DNA of 64,000 nucleotides from Bigelowiella natans CCMP2755 (Eukaryota; Protista; Cercozoa), in assembly GCA_000320545.1 (NCBI GenBank), contig ADNK01003025.1:62001-126000 (forward strand). The letters are read 5' to 3'. The notes beneath the pieces are model-generated. The model was not told the DNA's origin. It saw nothing but the letters and a program-made list of their open reading frames with translations, and searched no databases. The position numbers were made by a program, and so were the translations under genes. Shown here one piece after another: positions 39,001-64,000 of this stretch. Each line of letters starts with the position of its first letter. Positions within the stretch are counted from its first letter, which is position 1.

Positions 39001-42000
39001 ACCATTGACGTGTATCGATTCGTGCAAAATACTCGACAAGTACCAGGAGAAGTTTTCTTTAAAGCTGGACGAGACATCCGCTTCCTCGAGCCCACTGTTT
39101 TCAAGGATCTCACCGCAATTGCACAAGGTGCAATTCGCATTAATGCCGAGATTCATGTAATGGAAGGCGATATGGAATTGGAAGCTTCCAGTTATGACAT
39201 TGGACCTGGAGTTATGCTTTCGGCTATGGAAGAAAACATCCATATCCGAACATTGTCAGCACCAATGAAGCTGGAAGCTCCTGCCATTTGGAGGGCCGCG
39301 AAAAATATCTATGTTGAACCTACCGTCGTAATCAACGGAAGCGGAACTGTTGATTTCAATTCGGACTTCAACAACGACGATGTCGGTGAGTTGAAGTGTG
39401 CTTCAGGATCTAACTTTACAGTTGTTGATCCTGCTGTATCACAAATTCGTCTGACAGCTTCTAAGCTGGATCTGGCGTGCTACCTTAAAGCACTTGATGC
39501 TAATGTGACAGTCCAACTTTCCGATCATCCAGGATCTACCCTAAGTGTAGGTAATGACCATGGTGGTCTGCACCTGGATGATGGAGAGCTTGATCGAATC
39601 ACTACCACATCAGCATTCACCTTCGGAAGTGCACAAACTACTAACATTTACTTCGACGGTGTATCCCATTCAGACGTACCTAAGGATGTATTCGTCATCA
39701 GTCGCAACGCAATTAGATTCGAGGGATCTCCATCTTCGTTCTCTACTAGATTTAAGGCGCAAGCGGATAACGACATTTCAGTCGGTGCTCCTCTTACTGT
39801 TAGAGATGGAATTGTCACCATCACATCTGATGCTAAGTGTAACAGTTCTGGTACCTTATTCGTGACCTCGAGTGGATCTATTACAACATCTAACCAGGAA
39901 CTCTTTGTTTCTGTGCACGATGCTGTTCTTGACGGTCCTGTAAGTTCTGGTACAGCTGCAACCTATTGGACAGGATGTGCTGGTGTACACATGGTGCTAG
40001 GTAACGATGGAACGGATACACGAGGACAGATGCGCCTCTCCCAAGCTGAGTTGCGTCAATTGACCATGTCGAACTTGACGTTCACTACAAATAACGCCGA
40101 CATTTCAATTCTACACGTTGCAGTCAGAGACACAGCAACTGTAGATGGCATTGTCACCCTTGACGCTACAACTACAGGAACAATCCGATTCCTTGAAGAC
40201 TCGAGCTTCAAGTGGTTGAATACGTTCTCCGATGGCCATACTCACATCAATGCAAATCTGAACACCACAGAGAGTCATCTTGATGTGGTGTTGAGGAAGA
40301 ATGGCACGTGGTTGAGAATCAAGGAATCTACTGTTCGGGTCATCAAGGGACATCTTAAGATTGATGCTCCTGCACCTTCGAAGAAGGCAATTAATATTGT
40401 AGCTCCAGCAACACTGAAAGCTACCCAAGATATTTATCTATCACCACCTGTATATGTGAATGGATCTGGACAGATGCACTTCCATAGTGACTACGATGTT
40501 AACAAAATTGGAACCATCAGATTACGAAGCACATCAGGTGTCTACCTTGAACCAGGATCAAGCATTGCTTCAAGTGGAACTCTTGTGTTCACTGCTGCAG
40601 ATATGCACATTGATTCTCGAATTAACGCAGAGGGAGCAAACGTCACTGTGCAGACTACAGGATGGCCAAATTGGCCATTGCTGCTAGGTGATAGCTTCTC
40701 ACAAGACGGTTTGAAGCTAAGCGATTATGAGATTGACTTCTTCAACACAACTTCTCGTCTTGCTTTTGGAAGCATGATTACAAGTTCTGTGGAATTCGCA
40801 AATGTGTCCTACATGGGACTTGCTGAACACTTGGATTTCGTTTCGGTTAATAGAATTGTTGCTTCTAAGGGAGAAACGTACATCCAAGCAGGAGCTCGGG
40901 TACAATTTACCACGAATGGAGACATCGATATCCATTCCAATGTAACAATCAAAGGAACTACCATTATGAAGAGTGATATTGATTGCACACGTACTGGGAA
41001 TGTAAATGTTACAAATAGGGGATCTTTGAACACCATGAATCATGACCTCAGAATTCACGCGTTCGATATGAACATTGAAGGAGAGGTTAACACTGGATCT
41101 GAGATCTTCTCCGTCCTCGTTTGTGATGGTGTAAGCATTGATGTCGGAGGAAACGGTGATAATGCTGGTGACTTTAAACTCTCCTCAAAAGAATTGAGTT
41201 TTATCACTAGCAGCAACATGACCTTTATCACCCCAACGTCCAACATCAGCCTTTACCACACTACGCCAGTTCATACTGAAAAGGTCGCAGGATTTGTTCG
41301 ATTCGACGCTGGTGACGCAATCATCGTACACGAGAGCTCTCAGTACAAGGCATTGATTATGCTCTCGAAACGTATGACCGAGTTCCGTGCGGACACGCTT
41401 GTCTATGAGCGTGACATGTACATGGAGACCGGAGTAGGAGGTCGATTCGTCGTCTCCACTGTCAACCTTACGGCTACTTACGGAAGTATTCGATTCCAAG
41501 GTGATGCGACTCGCAAGATCTATCAAACCAGTCCATCGATCTGGACCACCGGCACCGATATCGTCGTTGGTCCACCTATGGAAGTTGTTGGTACTAAGGA
41601 GCTATTCTTCAATAGCGACTTGCACCATCAGAACGCTGGATTGATTTCGATAACCTCTAATATTACCATTAAGGATCCAAATGTGGCAAGCATCAGGATG
41701 GAAGGAAGTGACTTGCACTTCAATCCACATCTTCATGCATTGCATGCAAATATCACTATTTATACTTCTCCTTACCCAGGGTCAGTAATGAGTTTGGGTA
41801 CATTGGTGAAGGGTATGCACATCGATGACGGTGAGCTCGATAGGATGTACACGACAGGTCGAATCACTTTCGGTTTCCCAGGAACGGAAAGAATCTTCAT
41901 GTCTGGATTCAGTTATGACGGTGCTTCATATGGAGTTGACATGATCGCTCGCGAGCATGCTATCTTCTGGGGCCTGCCGAACTCGTTCAACACTGACCTC

Positions 42001-45000
42001 AATGTTGTATCACTTAACGACACAATCTTCTCGAACTCCACCCTCGATGTCATCGGAACCATCACACTCCATGCGCGAAAGAATATCCATCTGATGGAGA
42101 ATGTCACCAACAATGCCGACTTCTGGGCAATCGCTGATACCGATTGCAGCGGAAGCGGTGTGTTCAAAGTTGGAAACGATACCTGGGTTGTCACCAACGA
42201 CAATCTGATGACCCTCAGAACCCATGATATCGCTCTCTACGGTCACATTGACACCGGTGTGGATACCATCAAGATGTCCGTCTGTCCTGGAATCTCCATG
42301 GATATTGGTGGTACTGGACATGGAACCGGCCAATTCCGAATTCAACAGTCTGAGCTACAGCTGCTGATCTCTAAGAATGTGTCGTTTACTAGTCCTACGA
42401 AGAACATCAGCGTATACCACACATTGCAAACCGATACAACGGATGTTGCCGGATTCTTCAAGTTCTATGCTGGAGATACCTTCAGACATGTCGAATCTAA
42501 CACATTCAAGTCCGTGCTTGCTATTGCTCCAAACACAATCGTCGCAAAAGATATTGTTGTAAACGTACACGAAGGGGATATGGACATCCAATCCGAGTTC
42601 TATACCGTAGACTCTGGAACCCATTTCTCCTCCGAGTATGCTGACATTCGCTTCCGCACGATCAGCGGAGCAATGCAAATGGAACTGACCTCGCCTTCCA
42701 CTTGGCGTGCTGCCGAGCACATCTTGGTGGAACCAGCCACCAACATATACGGAAGCGGTGCTGTACAGTTCTACAGTGACTACAACAACACAGGGTACGG
42801 AACGTTGACGTTCTCTGGAACCTCGAATCTCACTGTAAGGGTTCCAACAGTTGAGACTATCGTCTTCACAGCAGCAGATCTCGATCTTTCCTGCTTCGTG
42901 AATTCGATGAAAGCAAACGTTACAATCGAGGTTTCCAACACTCCTACCTCGACGCTAAGTGTTGGTGCGAACAATGGAGGCTTGCACTTGAGTGATGCTG
43001 AGCTTGATCGAATTAAGACTGCATCGGCACTCTCATTTGGGAGCCTTCAAACTACAAATATTTACTTCTCTGGAGTTACACATACCGATGTTCCATTGGA
43101 TGTTTTTGTGATTAGTCGCAACGCCATCCGATTCACTGGAACAACCAGTTTTGTTACAAGGGTTGGGTTACATGCACACAACGATATTGTGATCTCGGCT
43201 CCTGTTGACATCAGAAATGGGCCAGTTGATATTCAAACAGATGCTACGTGCAACAGTACCGGAACACTGTTTGTTAAATCTGCAGGTTCGCTTACAACTA
43301 ACAACAAAGAGTTGTTCTTGTCTGTGCACGACTTCGTTCTTGAGGGACCAGTATCTTCAGGAACTGCAGCGATTTACGTAACAGGGTGCAGTGGTGTTCA
43401 CATGGTCCTTGGTAATGATGGTACCGATAGTCGTGGTCAATTGAGGCTCTCTCAATCTGAGTTGAGTCAGTTGACTTCTACAAATCTAACTTTCACTACT
43501 GTCAACGCGGATATCACCGTCTTACAAACTGAAATCGCAGATACAGAGAAAATAAATGGCATTTTGACTCTTGACGCTGTTGGTACTGGAACACTGCGTT
43601 TCTTGGAAGACAGTACCTTCAAGTTTTTGCATACTTTCTCCGATAGTCACACGCATATCAACGCAAATCTTAATACTACTGAAAGTCACCTTAATATCGT
43701 GCTTCGCGAGCCTGATACTATGCTCAGGGTGAAGTCCGTAACGATGAATGTTCACAATGGACATATGAAGATTGATGCGCCTTACGCAAGCAGGAATAAG
43801 ATTAAGATCCTATCTCCAGCCACTTTGATGGCATCAGAAGATATTTTCTCTTCCGTTCCAATGTACGTTAATGGTTCTGGAGAGACTCACTTCCACAGTG
43901 ATACAGAACAAAACAACTTTGGTTCTTTAGTGTTCACAAAGACTTCTGGACTGTACCTCGAAGAAGGTGCGGACATCTCTACCAAAGGAACTCTCGTCTT
44001 TACTGCAGCAAACATGATCCTCGACTGTCCTATCGAAGCTCAAGCCGCTAATGTAACTGTCCAGACTTCCGGATACCAGAACTGGCCACTGTTGATTGGG
44101 GATAACTACACCATCCCCGGTTTCAAGCTCAGTGACCGTGAACTCGACTTCTTTAATACAACCTCAAGACTCGCGCTAGGAAGTATGCAAACAAGTTCCG
44201 TGGAACTTGGTGACGTATCCTACACAGGACTCGCGCAGCATCTTGATATTGTTGCAATCAACCAAGTTGTGTTCAACAAGAATGCGTCTTATCTACAGGC
44301 AGGAATGAGAACACAGATCATCAGCAAGGGCCACGTCGACATTCACTCGAACCTCACGATCGATAGTATCACTATCATCAAGAGTGACTTCGATTGCTCA
44401 AGGCATGGAAACGTCAACGTCACCGAGAGAGGCTCCATCGACACGCTCAACCATGACCTCAGGGTACATGCGTTCGATATGAACATTGAGGGTGAGATCC
44501 GAACTGGATCAGAAATCTTCTCTGTTCTAGTGTGTGACGGTGTCAACATCGACATCGGAAACGATGGAATGAAGACTGGAGACTTCAAGCTCTCCCAGGA
44601 TGAGCTTCGTTTCATCACGAGTACGAACATGACATTCATTACGCCTACTGCAAACATCAGCCTCTACTACACAATTCCTATTGATACTGAAAAGATCACT
44701 GGATTTGTCCGGTTGGACGCTGGCGACGCAATCACCGTACACGAGAGCTCTCAGTACAAGGCATTGATTATGCTTTCGGGACGTAAGACCGAGTTCCGTG
44801 CGGACACGCTTGTCTACGAGCGTGACATGTACATGGAGACCGGAGTAGGAGGTCGATTCGTCGTCTCCACTGTCAACCTTACGGCTACTTACGGAAGTAT
44901 TCGATTCCAAGGTGATGCGACTCGCAAGATCTATCAAACCAGTCCATCGATCTGGACCACCGGCACCGATATCGTCGTTGGTCCACCTATGGAAGTTGTT

Positions 45001-48000
45001 GGTACTAAGGAGCTATTCTTCAATAGCGACTTGCACCATCAGAACGCTGGGTTGATCTCATTCTCCCCTCTGTCGAAGATTGTTGTCACAGATCCAAATG
45101 TGGCAAGCATCAGGATGGAAGGAAGTGACTTGCACTTCCATCCAGATATGAGGGCGTTGCATGCAAATATCACTATTTATACTTCTCCTTACCCAGGGTC
45201 AGTAATGAGTTTGGGTACATTGGTGAAGGGTATGCATGTAGATGATGGTGAGCTTGATCGAATCTACACAACCGGTCAACTTACATTCGGACATCCAGGC
45301 ACCGAGAACATTTACATGAGCGGGTTCACTTACAGCGGAAATGCCCACAGTGCTCATTTTGTTGCTAGAGAGAGTATCCAAATGCAAGGCGGAGGCAACT
45401 CTTTCAGCACTCATGTGAATATGCTTGCTTGGAATAACAGCATTACGTCGAACACTTCGCTTGATGTTGATGGAACCTTGACTATGTATGCACAAGTGGA
45501 TATCGAGCTGTTCGAAAATGTGACTTCCGCTGGAATCACTAAGTTTGTCACAAACAAGAACTGTGATTCAAATGGAGTCTTAATTATTGGACCAAACGCT
45601 GTCGTTAGAACCTCGGACAACTACATGGAGATCACTGCAGAGGATATTGTCCTCTCAGGTCTCCTATCAACGGGAGTTGAGAGTCTTAAGATAGACGTAT
45701 GTGACAACACTTCATTCGTACTCGGGGGAGACAATCAGACAAATGAGCACGGAGTGGTATTAGAGAGGCTGGAACTCCAGCGCCTCACCACGAACAATTT
45801 GACCATTGAAATTCCAGATGGTTCAATTGACGTATACCACCTTGAAGCCCACGATACGCATGATGTGTCTGGATGCATCTACTTACACGTCTCTGATGGT
45901 GTCGACTTCACTTCGTTCACACAGGTAAAAGATTTGTCTGTTACCGCCCAGACCTTGGTGAAGATCCAAAAAGATGTCCTCATTACCCACAAAGATTTTG
46001 AGATTTTTGGTGACACGGACATCATCATTTCGAAGAACGTAAGCATAACTTCTCATCACGGATCTATTGTATTTAATACAAGCTCCGCCTCTACGATGGA
46101 AATGTATTCTCCATCTGTATGGAATGCATCCCACACAATCCTCGTTAATCCTCCCGTAACTATCGGTGGTGTTGAGAACTCAAGCTTCTACGCAGATACT
46201 AATGCTGATGGAACCGGAGTTATCATCTTGAGATCCAATGTAACTGTTGTTGATCCTTCTTTGGATCTCATCAGCATTCATGCAGCGGATTTCATTCTGG
46301 AGAGTTATTTAAGTGCCTATCAGGCTGATATCTTCATGGCAACATCTCCATATCCTGGATCGACGATGCTATTCGGTGCATCGACGGCTCATGGATTCCA
46401 TGTGACTGATAGTGAGGCTGATCGTATCTCAACTACTGGAACGCTCACAATTGGTGGTGAAGATACAGATATTATCGTTATCGATGGGTTAACTTTCGAT
46501 GGAGGAGTACTGTATACTCACATATCCGCTATGAAAACTCTGAAAAGTAACATCAGTTTTGTTGGTGGATATAGCTCCCTTGGTCAATCGGCAACCCTGC
46601 AAGCTATGCATGATATTAAGTCAGAGGCTGACTTGAACATCAATGGTGAGCTGGTAGTCCGTGCTGACTCTGACTGCAACGATAAGGGTGACTTCAGAAT
46701 TACAGTGAATGGTTCGGTTGAAACTGTGGACCAACATATTAATATCACTGCGCACGATATGCGTTTGAAGGGAAGACTCAGCTCTGGAACTGCTGATATT
46801 TTCATCATCATGTGCTCTGGAAGATCTGTTGACCTTGGTGGCATGGGTGGAACGCCTGGAGATATGGTCGTTCAAGAGAGCGAACTTGCTCTCTTGTTTG
46901 CGGATGATCTCATTGTAGAGACAGGCGCAGGCTTGGTAACAACCTACGATGTAACACTTGCTGATATGGCTAACGTCACAGGTCGTCTGTTGCTACTGGC
47001 CAACAGCACAGCCTTTGATGGGGTAATTACCTTAAGAAACATTGATATCTACGCCAGAACTGGTATTGCGATGGCTGGAAATATCACAATTATGGAGCCG
47101 CTCCTTTTCGATGCAGACCCTCTTTGCGATGGACATGGTGCGTTCTCCATTGGACCAAATTCCCACATCCGCAGTAGCAATAACCCAATCTACATTAAGG
47201 CCAGCGATATCGATATGGCAGGATTCCTTGATTCAGGCCATGCTCCAACCACAATTAAGAGTTGTTCTGGAGCGGATATCGATATTGGAGGCTCTGGATC
47301 CGGAAGAAATATTAAGATCGGAGCTACCGAAATGAGTTATTTCATCGCATCTGATCTTCACCTTTATGCTCTTGAGAGTAACATCACCCTCCATGAGATG
47401 GAATACAAGCATACCACTTGGGTACGCGATACCATCTATGCAAGCACCACTCATCCGGGCAGTGCTTTCATTGTGGGAAGTGGAGAATTTAAAGAGCTAA
47501 ATGTAACAGCTGCAAACGGGCTCTGGATTCAGGCAAATGTATCTACAAATCGTGGAGATATTATCCTGGAGGGTAACCAGGAAGATACGAATAAAGCAGA
47601 CATCAATATCCTTGCTGACGTCCATCTTACCGCCTGGAACGGGTCTATTTGGATGCAAAGATCGCAAGACGCAAAGATTACCATGGCAGCGCCAGCATTC
47701 TGGAAAGCTGCTGAAAATATTACCGTCTATGCTCCTTTGTTTGTCACCGGGGAATACAACTTCGATATTCATGTTGACAGTGATGTCGATGGTGTAGGTC
47801 TGATCGAGTTTACTGACTCGTCAAACCTAACCTTCACCAGCAACTTAATCACCGAATTCAACATAAATGCAGCTGATGTCGAATTTGCCAGCTGGACTGA
47901 CCTGAATAGGGCCAATCTAAACATCAAGATGTCTAAAGAGACTGAGTCTATGAATTTAGGCATGGATGATGGTGGCGGACTCACGATTACTGATGCAGAA

Positions 48001-49146: not shown

Positions 49147-52100
49147 ACACCCTCGGGCGGGTTACCTTCGGTGGTACACTCACTCACCACATCCAAATTG
49201 AAGACTTCGGAGTGTGGGTTCTTGTAGACAACATCGTGATTGCGGCAATGATGCACACCAATAGTACCGTGACCTTCCAAGGCATGGCAGGAAATGACTT
49301 CTGGAAACCATTGTTCGTTAAGTCTCTTGGAGATGTCATTGTGAATGCACCTGTGAAAACTCGTGAAATAGCAACTGTCTTCACTGACGATGATTGCAGC
49401 AGGAAGGGTGAACTCATCGTTTCTGATACCGGAAGTATGGATGCACGATCGAACCTCACAATCAGGGCAAGTGGAATGCAGATTAATGGATCAGTTCATT
49501 CTGATACAGAACTATTTGTGTACGTATGCTTTGGAGATTCAATCAAAATCGGAGGGCGGAAAGAAGAGGGGGCACAAGTTGTCCTACAAAGATCTGAACT
49601 GAAGAATCTGGGGTCATCGAATGATGTAAATCTCAGAACTCAGTTCGGGACTATCTCAATCCATGAGAGTGAATTCGGAGATTACACCAATATTCAGAAG
49701 CATCTCGTGCTTGATGCACAGCTGGTTCAGTTGAATAGTAGTCTTGATCTGAACTCTCTGCGACTCTTCTCTCAGCAAGGATTCATGGTTCCACACAATA
49801 TCACAGCGAGGAAATCTCTCTATATTGATACGGACTCGTATTGCAACAACTCCGGTACCTTATGGGTGAGAGATAATGCCTACATCCAAGGTAAATATAC
49901 AGATACAAGGTTCAAGGTAACAGATGTGAGGTTAGATGGATATATTAATACTGGTACCAAGAGTACCGTATTCGGATTCTGTCCTGGACACACTCTGGCA
50001 ATTGGAGGAGACATTGACCGACCGCAACTCTTCGGATTGAAGAGAACAGAACTTCAGCATATTTATGCTGAAAACCTTCTCTTTGAAGCAGCTTTGGCCA
50101 ATGTATCTATGTATTACACATATGATTCTGATACGAAGAGGATTCCAGGAACAACTGAAGTACGAGCAGGCCATGTAAGTATTGTTCCTCCCTTCGGAAT
50201 CGAGTATCAAGGCATCAACATCACAGCTACGGCAGGCTTAAATGTGAATGCTGATGTAACAACTAAGAATGGTGATCTCTACCTTGAGGGCGACGAGAAT
50301 GGAGTTGCAAATAGAAAACACGCTATTGTTTTCCACAACTCTACTCTTACCGCAATCGGAGGCTCCATTTATCTACAGCAGACAAAGAATCTTGAAATCG
50401 AAATCCACGCTCCTGGTGCATTCCAAGCGACCAAGGATATCGTGGTGAACGTTCCTTCTCAAATTCTTGGGGAGCAACAATTTAAGATTCATGCTGACAC
50501 AGACCAGGATGGTGTTGGTTTAATTGACATCAAAGCAAATGCAGATATGATGGTCGAAAGCCCAATGGTGACAAATTTCACCATTGAAGCAGCAGATTTT
50601 GAGTTAAGAAGTTTGTTGCACACGCGGCAAGCAGACCTCTACATCGATACCTCAGGCTACCCTGGTTCTACGATGAGACTAAATGGATCGAAGAGCGACT
50701 TCCACATGGATGACTTCGAGCTTGATGCCATCCTTACGTGGTCGTTCCTACGCTACGGTACAGTACAGACGGAGAACATTATTGTCACAGATTACCTATA
50801 TCTGAACTCAGCTCCGATTAAGTTCAAAACTGGTGGAGATCTTAAGTTCTTCGGAACAAGCACCCATCTAAACACCTCCCTCTTAGCTGAAGCTGACTCA
50901 GATATTGTAGTTCAATCAAATCTTGAAGTCATGAAAGAGGTAACAATGATGGCTGACTTCGACTGTACTGGCCAGGGTGATTTCAATATATCATCATTGT
51001 CAGAGATTGATTCCCACGGTTCCGTAATGAAACTTCGGGCACACGACATTGAAAACAAAGGTATTCTCCGTGCAACTGGAAATCACTTGGAGATCTCCGC
51101 TTGTAACGACCATCGAGTAGATGTTGGAGGAGAGTATAACTCTGCCGAAATGTCCCTGAAGGCCAGCGAGATTGATAACATGATCGCTAAAAACCTTACT
51201 ATCGTGATTCCAAGCGGTTTGATGAGAGTGTACAAAATGGACGCTGTTCATACCGCAGATATTGCAACGAAGGTTAATCTCATGGTACACAATGCTTCGC
51301 ATTGGGGTGAGATCAAATTTTTGGAACCAACGGTCTTCAAGTGGCTTCATGCATCCGCTGGAAGAATCGAAGTTCACAAGTCTATTCAGACTTACGTGAA
51401 CGATCTGTACCTACAATCTCTTCTTCCCGGTGTGTCAATGCTCATCGGGCCTAGTGTCAACCTGACTTCAACGGCAACTAGTATTGTTGTTGACAACTAT
51501 GCCAATAACACAATGCTAGTCCACACTCCTACAACTTGGAAGGCAGCTCAGGACGTCCTTCTCACCAGACCTGTAAATGTTACTGGTTCACACCATGTGT
51601 ACTGGAGCAGTGATATGCACAACACTGGAGCTGGTACTCTAAGGATCACGGAAACCTCTAAGGTCGAGGTTACATCAGACGATGTCTCTGAAGTTACTCT
51701 CGTAGGAGCCGATATGGAAATTGATGCTCTTGTACAGGGACACAAGGCCGATGTGTATGTCAAAAACACTTGGTCTGGATTAACGACATTGAGTCTCGGA
51801 AATGTGGCTCAAGGTCTGCACTTGACGAATGTTGAGATGAACTTTTTCGACACCACTGGATCATTAAGATTTGGTGGAGAGTCCACAGAAACACTGAAGG
51901 TGAACAACATCGACTACCTCGGAAGGCCATATGTAGTTCGCTTGCAATCCACGGAAACGGTGAATAGTAGTATTCTGGTTGGTGGCAGCGCAACCTTCCA
52001 CCAAGATTACCTTGAAATCTTTGCCAGAAATAATATTGTGGCTTCTGCCAACGTAACATCTGGAGGTCTGACTACTATCAAATCTGACTATGATTGTAAC

Positions 52101-55100
52101 GGAGTCGGTGATCTCAACATTACAAACTCAAGCGTAGTTCGAACTTTGGATAAGATCCTCAGAATCCAGGCTTACGACATTGATTTGGAAGGAAAGATGA
52201 GCTCAGGATTAGAGTCAACCGAAATCTCCACGTGTACATCACATTTGATCGACTTTGGTGGTAACGGTTTGACAAGCGGATACATGATCATTGATCGCTC
52301 TGAAGTGAATCATATGACAGCAGCAAATCTAACTATTGTTGCAGAGCATGGACACGTGAAAGTTTATGAGCTCAATACGTTCGACACTGAGAATCTACAA
52401 GTTGTGACTATCAACTCAACTGGAACGTATGGATTAGTGTCGTTCGAGGAATCCTCATCTTTCCGACACCTAAGATCGTTCTCAGAGAACACCACGATGA
52501 TTCATGCTGACATTTTCACAACTGAAGGATCAATGTATCTGGATGCAGATACAGAAATTCTCCAGAGCACAATAGATGTCACCGTTGCATCTATCGATAA
52601 GCTTTATCTGCAGAGCATCGGTGTTGGAAAGATTACTTTCACTGCAGGTGCAAATGTGACTGCAAGACAAGGTATGTTCTGGAATGCACCAACCACGGTG
52701 ATGGGCGAAGGATACTTGGTGATCGATGGAGACTCTGACGCAGATGCTGTTGGAACCATCCACATTTCACCAATTACGAATATCAAAATATTGAATACTG
52801 TAGATCAAGTATTCATTGCAGCTGCTGATATGATCCTTGATGGAAGCTTTGATAGTTATTCAAGCGTACTGCAGATCACAGTTACAAACAGCACAGGATC
52901 AACAATGCGTCTTGGTGGAACTCAATCTCATTTCCATTTGACTGATACCGAGATCAACCGCATTTCTCATGCAAACCATTTGATCATTGGTGGAGATCTC
53001 ACTGAAAACATAATAGTCAATGGAATCTCATACACAAAGAATCCTAACATTGTCAGACTTGTTGCTGAGAAGAACGACGAAAGTAATATCACCTTCGAAG
53101 CGACACCATCTACTTTCGTGACATCTCTAAAGCTTGTTGCACATGACAATCTAGTCGTCAACACAAACGTGACAACTAGCAGCGACCTGCAGATTGTCAC
53201 TGACTCAGATTGCAGTGGACAAGGATCTGTTGTAGTAGCGTCCGAATGCATGGTTCAGTCAGGCATACAGACCCTCATCGAGGCACATGATATCGTATTG
53301 TTTGGTATCATCAAGGCCGTTGATATGCCAATCACTATCAAAACGTGTGTTGGCCGAGACATCACAGTTGGAGGAGAAGGGCAGCCACATCATGACCTAG
53401 AAGTAGAGCAGGCAGAGCTTCAACAGCTCCGCAGCACCAACTTGACCTTCCTCACCACGGAGGGAACTATCCGTGTGCACAACATGAAAACAGTTGACAC
53501 CAAGGACATCGTCGGAATTGTGACCTTCAACGCTTCCGGGCAAGCAGGACACATCACCTTCGAGCAAAATGTCCACGTCAAGGGCATGCACGCACTGTCT
53601 TCGAACGGTATCACAATCAACAGTACCCTCACGATGACAGAGTCCAACATGGTAATCAACTCGGACCAATTCCCATCCAGCCAGTATGGTGTCAGAATCC
53701 ATCATGGTATCGGACTGATATCTCAGTACGGTATCATTCTGCTACAGCAGGATAGCGTCACAGCTCAGATCCACCAGACTACTCCTACATACTGGGAGGC
53801 GTCTGAGGGAATGACCGTCGGCGCGCCTGTAGTTGTGGACGGTGTCGGCAGACTTGTCGTCAACACCGACCGCGAGGCTGACGGAAAGGGAACTTTCGTG
53901 CTCGAAGCTACCTCCAACATCACCGTCACATCAGCAGTGGAGCAAGTTCACATTACCGCCGGAGACATCCGATGGGAGTGCCACTTGCAGGCCCTCAACT
54001 CTCCGATCGAGATCCAACCATCTCCATCGAGTGGATCATTGATGGCCCTTGGACTTACTGGAGATGGAGACGGTCTCCACATCAGCGATGTTGAGGCTGA
54101 CCGCATCCATACAACCAACACCTTAACGCTCGGTGGCAACCAAACTGAACGAGTCAAGTTTGACGGACTCACATACACCGACCGCGCAAGCGCAGTGTAC
54201 ATCCTTGCTGATAAGGTTCTTGGGGGTAACGTGACGTTCCACGGCACACCAGTGACCTTTGCTCAGCCGGTGTACATCAAGGTGCGCGACAGCGTCGACA
54301 TGCTCACTAACGTGACCATCAATGGATACACGTCCATCATCCTCGACGCTTGGTGCGAGCATGCAGGCGCTCCTGGGACGCTGTACCTCAGCGCAGGCAA
54401 CTTCCTCACCACACTTGACAACCTCCTCGAGGTGACTGCACGCGATGTAATCCTACATGGTGAGATTCACACAGGTATGGACGACATCATGTTCACCACC
54501 TGCCAGCACAACTCCATCGGAATCGGTGGCACTGGCAACGAGGAAGGATTGATGAACTTCAACCGCACTGAGCTTTCAAACCTCAAGTGTGATGACCTCA
54601 AGTTTGAGACCCCGGCCGGACAGATCAACGTCCATCTGGTTGAGGACCTCGATACTGCACGGGTAACTGGAGCTATCACCTTCAATGCATCCTCTGAGGA
54701 AGGAAAGATCATCTACAACGATGACGCCACCTTCAAAGAGCTGTTCTCCTGGGCCGGAAACGGTACTATCATCAGAAGCAACGTAGAAATCATGTCTACG
54801 GTTGGCGATCTGCTCTTCGAAGGCGATCACGAGAGTGAGAGCATCATCGAAAAGCACATCGATATCGAGTCCCATGTATCTATCCACGCCAAGAGGCACC
54901 TGTTCCTGCAACCATCAGCTACAGGATTCCTACGACTGGCTGTTCCTAGTAACTGGACCGCATGGGAAGGCATGACCGTTTACTCGCCACTCGAAGTAGT
55001 TGGCGCTGGAAAATGGTATGTTGATGCAGACCTCAACAACAACTATACCGGTACTGTGATGTTTGCGACAACCTCGAACGTCACGGTGACAAGTCGCCAG

Positions 55101-58100
55101 GTCTCTGAAATTACGCTCGCAGCTGCAGACATGCAGATGTGGCCGTTCTTCCAAGCCTACATGGCTGACTTGATCATCAAGACCTCCTACACCGTGGACT
55201 CCACGATTGCACTCGGAGCGACATCTGCTCACTTCCACCTGACCGATCGTGAGATGGACAACATCAACACGACGGGTACTATTACCATTGGAGGTGCCGA
55301 CACCAGCAATATCATTGTTGATGGTCTCACCTACAACGGAAGCGCCAGCAAGTTCTACTTGAATGCTATGAGGCAGCGCAACAGTACTATCAAGGTGGTC
55401 GGCTCGGATGTTTGGTTCGTGCAACCAATAGAAATCAATACTCGTGCTGCATTCGACATCGGCGCAAGTGTAGATGTATTGGGAACTATCCGAGTGGATG
55501 CTGATGCAGACTGTATCGCTCCAAGAGCAACCTCGAAGGTATCTGATGGAGTCACCATGACTTCAAACAACCACCATATCTACTGGAGAAGTCACACTCT
55601 CGAGTTGAATGGTCGCTTCGTCGCGGGTAGCATGCCTATCGAATTCTCTATGTGTCCTGGAGGCGCAATTGATATCGGTGGCAACGGCGACGGACTCGCA
55701 CACTTCAGTCTGAATAAGACCGAATTGCAGCACCTCGAATGTACTAACGTGACTTTCGAGACCGTCTCTGGTGACATCGACGTGTACGAGGTTGAAATTA
55801 CTGATACAGAACTCGTGATCGGACACGTGTATCTGAATGCGTCTTCGAACATGGGTAAGATCAACTTCAAGGGCCAGAACGCAGCATTCAAGACTCTCTA
55901 TGCGTATGCAGGAAATGGTACAACCATCTCCTCAAACATCCGCACTACAGAGCATGATTTGATTATTGAGGGAGACCACTCCCACAGTGGTACGGTTCCA
56001 AAGCATATCGACATCCTGGTCCCAGGTCTATCATTGACCTCCGAACAGGCCATGTTGAGACTGCAGCCGGGTGGATCAGGTTTCCTACGCCTTATGGCTC
56101 CTGGAAACTGGACTGCGAAGGATTACATCTCCATGGATGCGCCATTGGATATCCGCGGAAGTGGTGCTCTCGACATCAAGGCCGACAGCGATCACAACGG
56201 ATATGGATATTTCCGTGGTAGCAACATGACGAACCTGAACAGCGATATCACCTTGGTTTCGATCCGTGCTGCTGATGTAGAGTTGTTGGGAAGCTACAAG
56301 ATGCTTCACGCAGACTTTGTGGTGATTCCAACATGGCATCTGCCTGAAGTATCTCTAGGTGCTACGGTAATGCCAGGTCTTCATCTAACCGACCTAGAGC
56401 TCGACTACGTGACGACAAACGCCTCTGTGATCATTGGAAATCATGTAACTCGCAAGATCCACATGGATGGTGTCACTTATGAGAACCCAGCAACTAATTT
56501 TATCATTAGAACTTCTGCTAAATTAGAATCCAATGTTACTGTATCTGGGGGCGCATGTACTTTCTTGCCAATACTGAATATGTCGAGTGGACACTGGACC
56601 AACATCCAAACAGATATCACTGGATATGATGATATCTATATCCAGACAGATATCGATTGTGATACAATCGGAAATCTTTACGTCGGAGCTGGTTCAAAGG
56701 TTTATAGCGCAAAGAGAAGCTACTACACAACAGCCGACATTATCTTGGATGGACGCATTGAGAGCCATGACTCCATCCGTTTCTCAGTCTGCAGTGGTGA
56801 TTCGATTCAGAGCGGCGGGTACACGCAATATGCCCATGTCCATCTTGATAGACATGAATTAGCGCGTTTGGCCACGCAGAATCTAACCATTGCGTCTACG
56901 AACGGTAGAGTGATGATATACAACATGGAAAGTGTTGATACCAAGGATATCAGCGACCATGTCGTTCTAGATGCATCAGGAATTTCCGGTCAAATGGAAT
57001 TCCAAGAAAGAACATTCTTCAAGTCCCTCCATGCAATGTCTGGATTTGGTATGGTTGTCAATGATAACATTACAACTACTGTAGAAGACATTACGATCGA
57101 GAACGTCCACACTATCTTCGAAAACTTTGAGCCTCTTGGTTACAGTGGTGGGTATAAGATCTGTTCGAACTACGCAAGTAGTCCAAAGAACGAATATGTG
57201 TCCACTGCAAACGTAGGAGAGTGTGCCAATTCATGTCTGTCCAAGGGAAGTTGCGATTACTTCACCTGGTTCCCAAGTACTGCAGGTGCAATGGCCAATA
57301 GATGCTATTTGGTCTACGATTGTGGCACTGTTGAGCTAGTAGAGGATGATGTTGCGCAGCTGAAGGGGCAGAGCTACAAGAAACGTTTCGAATGGCAACT
57401 TGCGATGCAGATTGCTGCAGATGACGGCTTTGCCTATGATTCTTATCACTGGCAATCCAACACTTCTACCCTGAATACGAATGCGAACATTTCTGACAAC
57501 GTTAATGCGAAGTTCAGTACCTTCAACTCCGTTCAAACGAGAAGTATTAAGGTTTGCGTCGAAACGTTGAACAACTGTTTCTACCAAGGACTGAGTTACC
57601 CCGTATCTAATATGGCTGAACTCTTTAATGGAGTCTACCAACCGTACACTGTTGACGACGCTAGCATCACATCCGTGATGAATGCGACTGGATTCCGCAA
57701 TTGCCCACCTGTAAAGGCGGGATTCAATATCAAGTATGGCAATAACAAAGCTAGATTTGGTTTCTTCAACAATATTCCATCCCAAGCTTGCAATGTTGTG
57801 AGCGAGGCAGATGGAGTAATTGGAATCGGTATCAACGGAAAAGACTGCTGCCCAGCAGGAGCAGGATACACGAACTACTTCGTGAGCGACTACACCAACA
57901 CTGGGCATCAAGCTTCTAAGAAGGCATGGGTCTTTGTGAGGGAGCATAAGACTAATCCTCTCTGGGATATCATCGTTAAGAACTTTACAACGTGGAAGAG
58001 TGCTCAGCATATTGATCTCCAGGAAAGTACTGAAGGTAGGGTGAAGATCTCGAGTCCATTCGTGTTCCGAGCCAACTCTGGTATCAGGATTACTACTCCT

Positions 58101-61100
58101 GTAGAGGTTTGGGGTACTGGAAAGTTCCTAATCGATAGTAACTTTGATGCTGATGGTCATGGAGTGCTAAACATGAGACCGACATCTAATTTTACTGTCA
58201 TGACTTCCGAAGTTACACACGTTACGGTCAGTGCCTCAGACTGGATCCTTGATAGTCATTTCGATGCAAAGCATGCTGATCTTTGGATTGAAAACTCCAA
58301 CTCTGGTAACTCAACCATGAGACTTGGAGGACCTGGTCCGGACTTCCACCTCACTGATAGCGAAATCGATAGAATCAGCACAACAATGACTGTTCAGTAT
58401 GGTGGAGATCGCACAGAACGAATCATCTTGAATGGAGTTTCGGATTCCTCATCTTCGAGAGAAATTCAGCTCATTGCAAGAAAGAACAGTAAAAGCAATG
58501 TAACCTTCGAGGTTACACCTTCGACATACGTTCAGCCTCTCAAGATCATTACTACAAGCAACTTGGTAGTGAACACAAACGTATCCACAACTGACAAGAT
58601 CCATGTCGTTCAAGACTCTGATTGTAGCGGACAAGGATCTGTTGTAGTAGCGTCCGAATGCATGGTTCAGTCAGGCATACAGACCCTCATCGAGGCACAT
58701 GATATCGTATTGTTTGGTATCATCAAGGCCGTTGATATGCCAATCACTATCAAAACGTGTGTTGGCCGAGACATCACAGTTGGAGGAGAAGGGCAGCCAC
58801 ATCATGACCTAGAAGTAGAGCAGGCAGAGCTTCAACAGCTCCGCAGCACCAACTTGACCTTCCTCACCACGGAGGGAACTATCCGTGTGCACAACATGAA
58901 AACAGTTGACACCAAGGACATCGTCGGAATTGTGACCTTCAACGCTTCCGGGCAAGCAGGACACATCACCTTCGAGCAAAATGTCCACGTCAAGGGCATG
59001 CACGCACTGTCTTCGAACGGTATCACAATCAACAGTACCCTCACGATGACAGAGTCCAACATGGTAATCAACTCGGACCAATTCCCATCCAGCCAGTATG
59101 GTGTCAGAATCCATCATGGTATCGGACTGATATCTCAGTACGGTATCATTCTGCTACAGCAGGATAGCGTCACAGCTCAGATCCACCAGACTACTCCTAC
59201 ATACTGGGAGGCGTCTGAGGGAATGACCGTCGGCGCGCCTGTAGTTGTGGACGGTGTCGGCAGACTTGTCGTCAACACCGACCGCGAGGCTGACGGAAAG
59301 GGAACTTTCGTGCTCGAAGCTACCTCCAACATCACCGTCACATCAGCAGTGGAGCAAGTTCACATTACCGCCGGAGACATCCGATGGGAGTGCCACTTGC
59401 AGGCCCTCAACTCTCCGATCGAGATCCAACCATCTCCATCGAGTGGATCATTGATGGCCCTTGGACTTACTGGAGATGGAGACGGTCTCCACATCAGCGA
59501 TGTTGAGGCTGACCGCATCCATACAACCAACACCTTAACGCTCGGTGGCAACCAAACTGAACGAGTCAAGTTTGACGGACTCACATACACCGACCGCGCA
59601 AGCGCAGTGTACATCCTTGCTGATAAGGTTCTTGGGGGTAACGTGACGTTCCACGGCACACCAGTGACCTTTGCTCAGCCGGTGTACATCAAGGTGCGCG
59701 ACAGCGTCGACATGCTCACTAACGTGACCATCAATGGATACACGTCCATCATCCTCGACGCTTGGTGCGAGCATGCAGGCGCTCCTGGGACGCTGTACCT
59801 CAGCGCAGGCAACTTCCTCACCACACTTGACAACCTCCTCGAGGTGACTGCACGCGATGTAATCCTACATGGTGAGATTCACACAGGTATGGACGACATC
59901 ATGTTCACCACCTGCCAGCACAACTCCATCGGAATCGGTGGCACTGGCAACGAGGAAGGATTGATGAACTTCAACCGCACTGAGCTTTCAAACCTCAAGT
60001 GTGATGACCTCAAGTTTGAGACCCCGGCCGGACAGATCAACGTCCATCTGGTTGAGGACCTCGATACTGCACGGGTAACTGGAGCTATCACCTTCAATGC
60101 ATCCTCTGAGGAAGGAAAGATCATCTACAACGATGACGCCACCTTCAAAGAGCTGTTCTCCTGGGCCGGAAACGGTACTATCATCAGAAGCAACGTAGAA
60201 ATCATGTCTACGGTTGGCGATCTGCTCTTCGAAGGCGATCACGAGAGTGAGAGCATCATCGAAAAGCACATCGATATCGAGTCCCATGTATCTATCCACG
60301 CCAAGAGGCACCTGTTCCTGCAACCATCAGCTACAGGATTCCTACGACTGGCTGTTCCTAGTAACTGGACCGCATGGGAAGGCATGACCGTTTACTCGCC
60401 ACTCGAAGTAGTTGGCGCTGGAAAATGGTATGTTGATGCAGACCTCAACAACAACTATACCGGTACTGTGATGTTTGCGACAACCTCGAACGTCACGGTG
60501 ACAAGTCGCCAGGTCTCTGAAATTACGCTCGCAGCTGCAGACATGCAGATGTGGCCGTTCTTCCAAGCCTACATGGCTGACTTGATCATCAAGACCTCCT
60601 ACACCGTGGACTCCACGATTGCACTCGGAGCGACATCTGCTCACTTCCACCTGACCGATCGTGAGATGGACAACATCAACACGACGGGTACTATTACCAT
60701 TGGAGGTGCCGACACCAGCAATATCATTGTTGATGGTCTCACCTACAACGGAAGCGCCAGCAAGTTCTACTTGAATGCTATGAGGCAGCGCAACAGTACT
60801 ATCAAGGTGGTCGGCTCGGATGTTTGGTTCGTGCAACCAATAGAAATCAATACTCGTGCTGCATTCGACATCGGCGCAAGTGTAGATGTATTGGGAACTA
60901 TCCGAGTGGATGCTGATGCAGACTGTATCGCTCCAAGAGCAACCTCGAAGGTATCTGATGGAGTCACCATGACTTCAAACAACCACCATATCTACTGGAG
61001 AAGTCACACTCTCGAGTTGAATGGTCGCTTCGTCGCGGGTAGCATGCCTATCGAATTCTCTATGTGTCCTGGAGGCGCAATTGATATCGGTGGCAACGGC

Positions 61101-64000
61101 GACGGACTCGCACACTTCAGTCTGAATAAGACCGAATTGCAGCACCTCGAATGTACTAACGTGACTTTCGAGACCGTCTCTGGTGACATCGACGTGTACG
61201 AGGTTGAAATTACTGATACAGAACTCGTGATCGGACACGTGTATCTGAATGCGTCTTCGAACATGGGTAAGATCAACTTCAAGGGCCAGAACGCAGCATT
61301 CAAGACTCTCTATGCGTATGCAGGAAATGGTACAACCATCTCCTCAAACATCCGCACTACAGAGCATGATTTGATTATTGAGGGAGACCACTCCCACAGT
61401 GGTACGGTTCCAAAGCATATCGACATCCTGGTCCCAGGTCTATCATTGACCTCCGAACAGGCCATGTTGAGACTGCAGCCGGGTGGATCAGGTTTCCTAC
61501 GCCTTATGGCTCCTGGAAACTGGACTGCGAAGGATTACATCTCCATGGATGCGCCATTGGATATCCGTGGAAGTGGTGCTCTCGACATCAAGGCCGACAG
61601 CGATCACAACGGATATGGATATTTCCGTGGTAGCAACATGACGAACCTGAACAGCGATATCACCTTGGTTTCGATCCGTGCTGCTGATGTAGAGTTGTTG
61701 GGAAGCTACAAGATGCTTCACGCAGACTTTGTGGTGATTCCAACATGGCATCTGCCTGAAGTATCTCTAGGTGCTACGGTAATGCCAGGTCTTCATCTAA
61801 CCGACCTAGAGCTCGACTACGTGACGACAAACGCCTCTGTGATTATCGGAAACCATATCACTAGGATTGTTGTTATTGACGGACTTACGTATGAAAATCC
61901 AGCTAAGAACTTCACGATCATCACGTCGGCAACCCTTGAATCTAACGTGACCTTCCACAAGCATGCAAACTCATTCTTGCCAACTCTGCACGTCACTTGT
62001 GGTCATGATATTCACATTACGTCTAATGTAACCGTTCGTGCCGTGATGCGAATGTATGCGGATACCGATTGCGATACCCAAGGTGATATCAACGTCGGGC
62101 CAAATGCAACCATTACAGTCGACAGCGACATCTTCATGTCTGCTAACGATATGGATCTCCAAGGCTTCATTATTAATCCAGGACAGAACTTCTGGTATGA
62201 TGTCTGCCCTGGACGATCCATCCAGCTGGGAGGAATTACCAGGAATACACCTGATGCCCTTGTCCTCTACCAAACAGAGGTCGATCACATCTTAACAGAA
62301 AATATGACGTGGTCTTCCAAGGTAGGGGTAATTGAGGTCTATAATATCCTCCTTGAAGAGTCGCAAGATATCTACAGAGTTACATTGGATGCATCTCTGG
62401 GTGGCCGTACTAACTTCTTTGAGCCAACATGGTTCGGAGAAATACTGGTCAACTCGGGCAACGGAACCTTCATTCACAAGAACATTACTGCCACGCACGG
62501 AAATGCGATCTTCGAAGGAAATTGGAACCTCACTGCAACAGTTCCAAATGATATCTTCATTGGAAAACATGTCACCATCCGTGCTCATCATGGAAAGATC
62601 TTCCTAAATCCTACTATGACTGGTAGAATGCAGATGATTGCACCTCTTGGCTTAGTTGCGGGAGAGGACATTATGTTTGGAGCACCGATGGATATCCACG
62701 GGGATGGCTCGGTGTATTTCAGAACAGACTACAACGTGGTAGGATATGGTGAATTGTTCTGCTTCAGGACATCAAATATCTCCATTGTGTCTAAGAACGT
62801 CACGGAAATTAAGTTTATCAGCAAAGACATCCATTTCGAATGCTGGCTTGAGGCGAATATGTCACATGTTCACTTCATTACCTCAGCATCTCAAAATTGG
62901 GCAATGTCTATTGGACACTTCCATGAAGGTTACCATCTCTCAGATGAGGAGCTTGATCACGTTGAAACACGTGGTGATCTCATCATCGGGGACGAAACAA
63001 CTGGTACCATCTACTTTGATGGCGCTACTTATCTTGGAAACGCATTCCAGCTGAATATTACCAATGCACGTGATCCTACCACATCGGTGATCTTCCACAA
63101 TAAGTCGTCTCTATTCACACAAGAAATGTGGTTGCGAACTCGTCACAACGTATCAGTTAGAACAAATGTGACTGTGAAGTATGGGGAAACTCATATGTTC
63201 GCGGATACCCGTTGTGCAAGAACCGGGACGATTTACATCGCACCTGAAGCCACATTCAGCAGTGCCGACAACGTCATTGATATCCGTACGCACGACATGA
63301 TAGTCGATGGATATCTAAGATCTGGAAGTGAATCACTTTCTATCGAAGTGTGCCCAGACAATGTTGTCCAAGTGGGAGGAGATGAAATCGAACATCAGGA
63401 CCTTGTGCTGTTACAGCCTGAGCTTCAGCACATTGAATGTAACAACATCAGCTTCCACGCTCCAAATGGCCATGTACATCTCTACAGGATCACACAGTAC
63501 GACTTGGCAACCATCGCTAACAAGTTCCATGTGAATACGTCTGTTGCTAATGGAAACGTCACCTTCCATGAGAATGGTGATTTCCACATTCTGTACGTGT
63601 TTGCTGGCCATACGACTGTGATTGAGGCTAACCTTACAACCTCGATGGGAGCAATGTGGTTCCTTTCTTCGTTGAAGGACACCAACGTGAGTGTCGATCT
63701 ATCTACTCCGAATTGGAATCTGGATGAAAGAGAACTATTTGCCTTCCAGTATGATGAGGCTGAACACGGAGCCGGAATTATCGAAGTGAAGAGCAATGTA
63801 ACTATCGAACCTCACACTGACCTTTACATGAAGTCTGACCCAAGAGGTCTAGTCTTCAGAAACCACATCATGATTGATGCTGGGGACAATGTGTACATTG
63901 AGAGTCCAATGCTAGTAACAGGCGATGGTTCTCTTTACATCAACGCCGACAGGAAAGATGCAGGAACCGGAAACTTCAGTCTTGGCCAACTGTCACCAAT
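49113..64000 (+). CDS. Giant repeat glycoprotein, part 2 (frame +3, 3'-partial, about 4,960 codons, no stop before window end); continuation of part 1
   Basis: Manual translation from 49113 gives FHLTLAEYKYLNTLGRVTFGG..., and the window ends ...YINADRKDAGTGNFSLGQLSP in the same frame. The same repeat motifs recur (DxDC, IGG...EL, DxDxDGxG, FHLxDxE). Every + strand ORF the track lists after 49113 is in frame +1, consistent with frame +3 running off the end without a stop. Frame +3 is open from 49080 (after TAA at 49077). Confidence 0.93.
53217..56431 (+). repeat. Direct repeat D, copy 1 (3,215 bp; partner at 58629-61843)
   Basis: Offset is 5,412 bp. The whole series of shadow ORFs is duplicated. 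One synonymous difference was seen (CGC at 56154-56156 vs CGT at 61566-61568). Confidence 0.94.
57126..57383 (+). other. PAN/apple-like domain inserted in the giant protein (frame +3)
   Basis: Translation: GYKICSNYASSPKNEYVSTANVGECANSCLSKGSCDYFTWFPSTAGAMANRCYLVYDCGT...QSYKK. The pattern EC-x3-C-x5-C-x2-F-x-W...CYL is the PAN/apple core. Confidence 0.75.
57393..57941 (+). other. Fibrinogen-C-related globular domain resembling the coral skeletal organic matrix protein 5 (USOMP5) family (frame +3)
   Basis: Translation: WQLAMQI...FAYDSYHW...NAKFSTFNSV...IKVC...AELFNGVY...GFN...KARFGFFNN...C..ADGVIGIG...AGAG...AWVFVR. The motif order matches my recollection of that family (WTLVMK, F.Y.S..W, ETK, GFN, KARIG, DS.IG.G, YILV). 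Not verified by a search. Confidence 0.6.
58629..61843 (+). repeat. Direct repeat D, copy 2
   Basis: Near-identical to 53217-56431; the flanks are homologous but diverged. Confidence 0.94.

Follow-up and report, generated by a model that had tools for sequence, protein, structure and literature searches.

The window analysed in this study, a stretch of 64,000 nucleotides (nt) from Bigelowiella natans CCMP2755 (contig ADNK01003025.1, positions 62,001 to 126,000), lies inside a giant gene composed of long repeat units, and one segment of it departs from the repeat. We consider that this segment, at 57105-57965, is probably a translated, unspliced, two-domain extracellular binding cassette, in which a PAN/apple-like module is followed by an intelectin-like domain, and which replaces a beta-helix turn of ~10 amino acids (aa); the surface protein that carries it exceeds 36,500 aa. 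The analysis established the identities of the two domains at the sequence and fold levels, the geometry of the insertion, the presence of the segment in RNA libraries, and purifying selection on its reading frame.

The insert interrupts the repeat array in frame

A profile of the ~370-aa repeat unit, with matches spanning ~343 profile positions, was built and searched along the contig beyond the window. It gave 82 matches spaced 22-36 aa apart, with the sole exception of a 310-aa gap between window positions 57104 and 58035. Alignments with sibling units place ~285 extra aa of this gap between ...DITIEN and ...PLWDIIV, where the siblings carry a turn of ~10 aa (DLIIE-GDHSHSGTVPK-HIDIL), and the insert contains 4.2% cysteine (Cys; 12/287) versus 0.6-0.9% in the host; the original prediction, which had placed an in-frame, Cys-rich insert of ~280 aa exactly here, was thus borne out. 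The insert frame is free of stops over 287 codons and in phase with both flanks, and its DNA and protein are both unique in the 91-Mb assembly. The same prediction described the insert as the only non-repeat stretch; this holds within the window, where no other non-repeat stretch longer than 70 aa was found, but not for the whole gene, because NHL, IPT/TIG and Cys-rich domains follow beyond the window. The plus strand of the window is nearly all open, in frame 1 from 1 to 49143 and in frame 3 from 49080 to 63998, and the region is absent from the open reading frame (ORF) listing, as had been remarked, because frame 3 overruns the window end.

The content of guanine and cytosine (GC) of the insert and its GC at third codon positions (GC3) resemble those of the neighbouring host sequence, and because of this match the cassette is taken not to be a recent arrival. 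A foreign origin was considered and rejected, GC and GC3 being host-like and the codon-usage distance being high but confounded by amino-acid composition.

The flanking units form a predicted beta-helix that continues across the insertion site

The host was modelled with AlphaFold2 (AF2) as unit, insert and unit, from an alignment of 47 sibling di-units, which contains siblings only and is uninformative on the orientation of the cassette. Both flanking units were modelled as all-beta structures with short regular strands, at a predicted local distance difference test score (pLDDT) of 82-97. When this model was compared with solved structures by VIA-align, right-handed beta-helices were returned throughout the list (HMW1, Cthe_2159, FHA, EtpA, HxuA, tailspikes and pectate lyases), and Foldseek, which gave weak rows only, pointed to the beta-helix theme for the host as well. 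The HMW1 secretion domain (2ODL; Z 16.2, model residues 311..928) and Cthe_2159 (4PHB; Z 14.5, root-mean-square deviation (rmsd) 3.3, 203 residues aligned, 232..768) both span the insertion site, a third template range (318..949) crosses it too, and the filamentous hemagglutinin (FHA) secretion domain matches the downstream unit at Z 14.0 over model residues 684..955. Since several single-domain templates run through from one flank to the other, the two flanks form a single unbroken helix in the model, from which the insert loops out. The host is therefore modelled as a right-handed parallel beta-helix continuous across the insertion site, in agreement with the earlier proposal that the cassette is plugged into a loop of the solenoid.

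The second domain resembles intelectins in fold

The second domain was modelled from a 76-row alignment with high confidence (Table 1). Exhaustive structural comparison placed human intelectin-1 alone on top (Z 9.2, rmsd 3.5, 164 residues aligned), the next fold scoring only Z 3.4, and the intelectin structures 4WMQ, 4WMO, 5ZC0, 6USC and 7E1E matched at Z 8.7-9.3 and rmsd 3.3-3.5, with 154-168 of the ~190 residues aligned. Classical fibrinogen-related domains (FGL1, angiopoietin-like, fibrinogen gamma, ficolin, FIBCD1 and tenascin) reached Z 2.2-3.1. Additionally, a shape search of the ESM atlas returned a cnidarian cluster named 'Skeletal organic matrix protein 5' (SOMP5; TM-score 0.50 by query and 0.61 by target, 181 residues aligned, rmsd 3.1) and a cluster named 'Fibrinogen C-terminal domain-containing protein' (TM-score 0.51/0.71), together with cnidarian clusters uniting PAN_1, EGF and Fibrinogen_C and with bacterial and viral clusters partly labelled Fibrinogen_C; the atlas feature search also indicated a cnidarian cluster.

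Positions 2-57 of PF00147 scored above the cut-off in four of ten long relatives (P0064, P0066, P0068 and P0147), directly upstream of the domain in three of the four, while in P0064 the best stretch lies ~200 residues upstream; the window copy has no such fibrinogen-like N-terminal head (A-subdomain). This layout, a short fibrinogen-like head and then a divergent body, is that of the intelectins, and because the relatives show it, the domain is best classed as a compact intelectin-like member of the fibrinogen-related superfamily. The predicted label 'fibrinogen-C/USOMP5-like' holds at the fold level, where intelectins and both the SOMP5 and Fibrinogen-C clusters are matched, with 'Fibrinogen-C' denoting a remote relation.

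The second domain belongs to a widespread, unnamed family

To judge from its sequence relatives, the second domain belongs to a real, widespread and so far unnamed family. A word search found two metagenomic tandem-copy proteins, with a unit of ~195 aa, that share 32% identity with insert residues ~95-282 (E 8.7e-35), and in a profile search of 1.8 billion representatives 557 proteins passed E <= 0.001, of which 110 also passed E <= 1e-30. The window copy retains all 13 invariant and all eight near-invariant residues of the family and all 12 Cys. In 20 relatives the partner domains are all extracellular, comprising LDLa, PA14, TIG, discoidin, laminin-G, Sushi, fn3 and MopE. No informative name was found among the sequence relatives, either in the matches of two word searches (two and five proteins) or in a cluster look-up of ten of them, and a pattern search of bacterial and archaeal genomes for the domain matched 90 places, none of which was confirmed.

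The closest relatives, P0152 (45% identity) and P0049 (with a weak NPCBM match), lie on marine and Tara metagenome contigs crowded with small ORFs without Pfam matches, and these contigs look virus-like or picoeukaryote-like. The family also occurs inside the very large metagenomic proteins P0085 (4748 aa) and P0131 (7227 aa); for one of the two, the source gives the name 'endonuclease I'.

The first domain is probably a divergent PAN/apple module

The first ~80 aa of the insert form a PAN/apple-like stretch. Three Pfam PAN models matched one core of ~40 residues in it (PAN_1 at E 0.0023-0.0039, PAN_4 at 0.0039-0.0056 and PAN_2 at 0.12-0.15), and in a language-model feature search of the atlas PAN clusters were ranked at the top (score 0.95, 175-179 features in common, recognition 2824). 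A profile was also made from the PAN_4 genes of the genome itself, using nine PAN_4-matching segments, five of which are above the PAN_4 cut-off, and hhalign matched the insert segment to it at E 1.7e-5 with a probability of 79%. The conserved PAN disulfide core is present as C41-x3-C45-x5-C51, followed by DYFTWF and then by C68 and C74, in columns that align with the nine segments. From the feature search, the profile comparison and the Cys pattern, we assign the first domain, with moderate confidence, as a divergent PAN/apple module, as had been predicted. The PAN segment gave no match to the N-termini of the second-domain relatives, and pairing with PAN was seen only in the cnidarian atlas clusters.

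The insert is retained in DNA and RNA libraries and its frame is under purifying selection

The insert stretch is complete in 14 DNA runs from 12 studies, and 53-89% of its words are present in seawater metatranscriptomes of several studies, in keeping with a marine organism. The genome itself gave at least 25 matches to genes of the light-harvesting complex, whereas no silicon transporter turned up in it, and a diatom was rejected as the source on the latter ground. RNA-library contigs, compared over window positions 55800-59200, cover 56402-57145, 57119-58360 and 57946-58214, so both insert borders are crossed, with no joints seen, and a 2257-nt DNA unitig likewise crosses the junctions without a joint. 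The two points on which the original prediction could have fallen, a lack of domain matches and a splicing-out of the segment, were both resolved in its favour. Between the window and these contigs nine variants were found, one of them within the insert, and all nine are synonymous third-position changes in frame 3, for which the chance of all falling at third positions is ~5e-5; because of this, the frame is judged to be under purifying selection.

The cassette is bracketed by two copies of a direct repeat of 3.2 kb (Table 1). The DNA word depth is 198 in the repeat and 84.5 in the unique middle, and the ratio ranges over 2.2-2.45 where 2.0 is expected; the excess may be due to noise, to a third copy or to a fraction of molecules without the cassette. 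In-frame recombination between the two copies could delete or multiply the cassette. A near-identical, insert-less duplicate of the upstream unit was also sought as a candidate and ruled out, the 3.2-kb duplication stopping at ~56420, ~700 nt 5′ of the insert.

Discussion

Based on these findings, we propose that the cassette would provide the beta-helix rod with one laterally placed site of recognition. Lying ~92% of the way through the array of units, and so closer to its membrane end, this site would most likely recognise a glycan, with Ca2+ probably taking part as in the intelectins, although its ligand could also be a protein. By analogy with the intelectins, whose Ca2+ sites and ligand residues hold an exocyclic 1,2-diol, we infer a lectin function, for which Ca2+ dependence is plausible.

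Several observations weigh against this interpretation. For the first domain, all PAN scores in Pfam are under the gathering cut-offs (PAN_1 17.4-18.2 versus 21.4 bits; PAN_4 17.1-17.6 versus 27), and AF2, run on the PAN part without homologues, gave pLDDT 30-55, so that its fold is not confidently modelled. For the second domain, single-sequence (phmmer) and 76-row profile searches of all PDB sequences returned no meaningful match, and no intelectin at E <= 10; PF00147 over the domain itself was matched by none of the 76 aligned family members at E <= 1; and the window copy is without two of the three Asp in the D-x-x-D-A-D motif common in the family. In the host model the insert has a pLDDT of ~26, and this model does not show how the cassette is oriented on the rod. 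As for expression, the metatranscriptome contigs may include DNA, and the culture RNA run consists of 5 reads only, from which expression in culture looks low. Finally, in view of two assembly frame changes upstream of the cassette, the whole protein may not be synthesised as a single chain.

The same anatomy could serve other purposes than glycan binding, namely protein contacts, as in fibre bundling or the docking of a partner through the PAN module, or the binding of a mineral or scale matrix. We regard this as unlikely. In its favour, PAN/apple modules take proteins as well as carbohydrates as ligands, the nearest cluster in structure that has a name is called after a skeletal organic matrix protein of corals, whose occurrence in the skeleton matrix would fit such a role, part of the acidic motif of the family is missing from the window copy, and the family partners Sushi, fn3, LDLa, discoidin and laminin-G are general adhesion modules. 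However, the best solved matches are all carbohydrate-binding intelectins, a WSC domain is present in the host protein, and PA14 and NPCBM-type glycan-binding partners accompany the domain in relatives; moreover, we know of no mineralised structure in Bigelowiella natans. It seems very unlikely to us that the cassette is merely a passenger, a domain acquired through exon shuffling or gene conversion that an exposed turn tolerates, without a role and prone to recombinational loss. Such a passenger is consistent with the single copy among ~80 units, with the domain being the sole member of its family in the genome, with the identical in-frame repeats on either side, and with the excess repeat depth (2.2-2.45x versus 2.0 expected), which could hint at molecules lacking the cassette. 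Against it, the family-conserved residues and the 12 Cys are all kept, the 287 codons are free of stops, the sole internal variant is synonymous, the same sequence recurs in the 14 DNA runs of 12 studies and in the seawater RNA libraries, and GC and GC3 are host-like.

That the segment is no protein feature at all, and instead an intron, the remnant of a transposon, or a chimera created in assembling the repeat array, is close to refuted. The highly repetitive surroundings and the two assembly frame changes in the gene speak for it, but the frame is open and phase-matched to its flanks, protein homology is strong, the fold is confident, and the 2257-nt DNA unitig and independent environmental RNA contigs cross the junctions with no joints. 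A bolder version of the binding-cassette reading may be put forward, which we consider conceivable though rather doubtful: the second domain would represent an ancient, unnamed and mostly marine 'mini-intelectin' lectin family (557 clusters at 50% identity, no Pfam model) that predates chordate intelectins, and a single PAN-fused copy of it would have been captured as a recombination-switchable lateral docking site, for bacteria, prey, scales or neighbouring fibres, on a sub-micrometre fibre.

Among known systems, the intelectins, or X-type lectins (human intelectin-1, 4WMQ; Xenopus XEEL, 4WMO; lamprey LSVL, 7E1E), are the best structural match of the second domain. They share with its relatives the layout of a Fibrinogen_C-type N-terminal piece and a body outside the Pfam model, and both are extracellular and disulfide-rich. 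However, intelectins measure ~280 aa, whereas the domain measures ~190 aa; identity over the structural alignment is just 9-11%, with no match at the sequence level; and the window copy has a PAN module in the place of the fibrinogen-like A-subdomain of intelectins and is embedded in a beta-helix, whereas intelectins are secreted oligomers. Coral USOMP5 and the cnidarian clusters named Fibrinogen-C align with the domain over 181-182 residues at rmsd 2.8-3.1, and in cnidarian clusters the fold is also joined to PAN_1 and EGF, as the cassette has PAN. These cnidarian and coral proteins are small and secreted (220-460 aa), while the domain is inserted in a rod, and the likeness comes from shape, not from direct sequence comparison. 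Literature on USOMP5 and on intelectin evolution was searched for comparison, and no functional or domain description was found. With the classical fibrinogen-related domains (ficolins, FIBCD1, angiopoietin-like proteins and fibrinogen gamma) the second domain shares the superfamily by weak fold similarity, with 107-146 residues aligned; they differ in having the A-subdomain, which is not in the window copy, and in PF00147, which fails over the domain (0/76). With the PAN/apple clan (PAN_1, PAN_4 and PAN_2) the insert shares the Cys core and the hydrophobic FTW motif, at scores below the curated cut-offs.

The best templates for the host are beta-helix adhesins and related proteins (HMW1/FHA/EtpA, IgA1 protease, SepA and phage tailspikes; Z 12-16), and autotransporter passengers are known to carry additional domains that loop out from their helix. 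Unlike the bacterial beta-helix adhesins, the host is eukaryotic, membrane-anchored and far longer (a helix of ~29,000 aa), and it has no sequence relation to the Pfam beta-helix families; a two-domain lectin-like cassette as the inserted unit sets it apart further. The components, namely the PAN module, the fold of intelectins and fibrinogen-related proteins, the beta-helix stem and the protrusion of domains from such stems, as in bacterial autotransporters, are each of a known kind; what is new is a two-domain cassette nested in a eukaryotic giant beta-helix, a domain family without a Pfam model or a characterised member, and its singleton status in the genome.

With 861 nt in one exon, the cassette makes a widespread, unnamed intelectin-like family accessible to expression; in this family the only named members are coral skeleton-matrix proteins. 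If it were solved or assayed, it could lend annotation to hundreds of marine proteins and serve as a test of whether intelectin-type glycan recognition is of pre-chordate age. The cassette also shows that a very long beta-helix rod can host a complete two-domain module in one inter-rung turn, which bears on binding sites of giant fibres and on display scaffolds. In practical terms, it is a unique-sequence marker within a repetitive 110-kb gene, of use for antibodies, probes and strain typing.

The giant host gene and accompanying features

The giant gene itself is more striking than the cassette. It consists of three abutting stop-free frames of 4482, 20097 and 11943 aa, ~36,500 aa in sum over ~110 kb, and is intron-free; the ectodomain totals at least 36,500 aa. 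A further open frame of 1027 aa with many transmembrane helices lies ~330 nt beyond these main frames, and this multi-pass membrane region is probably the end of the giant protein, which would be one of the largest known proteins, provided that it is produced as a single chain. The order of domains is WSC (near the N-terminus, E 1e-13), ~80 repeat units, NHL, ~46 IPT/TIG and Cys-rich Ephrin_rec_like; together with the transmembrane helices, these domains point to an extracellular setting for the cassette. Two frame changes fall within repeat units, at window positions ~-11087..-11075 (profile position 237->242) and 49101-49104 (100->101). Because the abutting frames continue the repeat profile, both are taken as indels of 1-2 nt and not as introns. 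The synonymous-only variation downstream, that is, purifying selection on the frame, argues that the change at ~49101 is an assembly error, and it suggests the same of both. Within the genome the 370-aa repeat occurs only in the giant gene and in one small 4-kb contig; outside the genome, the word-indexed protein collection yielded one relative only, and the repeat has no match in Pfam.

Table 1. Features of the window and of the gene that contains it. Positions are in window coordinates; negative values and values above 64,000 lie outside the window on the same contig.
Feature	Position	Strand	Evidence and remarks
Whole in-frame insert, two-domain cassette	57105..57965	+	287 aa, 12 Cys; fills the sole abnormal inter-unit gap
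PAN/apple-like module	57162..57326	+	First to sixth Cys of the insert (C20-C74); core C-x3-C-x5-C ... C-x5-C
Intelectin-like, coral-SOMP5-like domain, ~190 aa	57390..57941	+	Family profile E 5.7e-63, sole match in genome; AF2 pLDDT ~95
Host beta-strand (..ITIEN) adjoining the insert on the 5′ side	57090..57104	+	Model strand E337-341, pLDDT ~90
Host beta-strand (DIIV) adjoining the insert on the 3′ side	57966..57977	+	Model strand E629-632, pLDDT >=87; aligns with sibling HIDIL
Host repeat unit upstream of the insert	56082..57104	+	Profile E 4.2e-90; AF2 pLDDT 82-96; best beta-helix template, Z 16.2
Host repeat unit downstream of the insert	58035..59084	+	Profile E 6.5e-104; AF2 pLDDT 87-97
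Left copy of ~3.2-kb direct repeat, nearly 100% identical	53200..56420	+	Offset-5412 identity scan
Right copy of ~3.2-kb direct repeat	58612..61832	+	Offset 5412 nt = 1804 codons, in frame
Giant host gene, part in the window	1..63998	+	Frame 1 to ~49101, frame 3 from ~49104
Whole host gene	-24472..84908 (C712 37528-146908), then 85234..88314	+	Second range, multi-pass membrane exon

A second giant gene, on a separate contig (C2862), carries a weak PAN_4 match (E 0.0046; locus C2862:192081-195230) in an open frame of 10,314 aa, and this frame does not share the 370-aa repeat. On the small contig of ~4 kb, 3.5 repeat units (C99:4-3819, minus strand) mirror positions 105798-107987 of the contig that bears the giant gene (C712), with slightly different scores, and the small contig probably represents a portion of that gene in an allelic or uncollapsed copy. 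Inside the window, the repeat units at 44926-47577 and 48811-50297 are irregular, in that partial profile matches overlap or restart at profile position ~160, and they look like internal partial duplications or deletions of the array.

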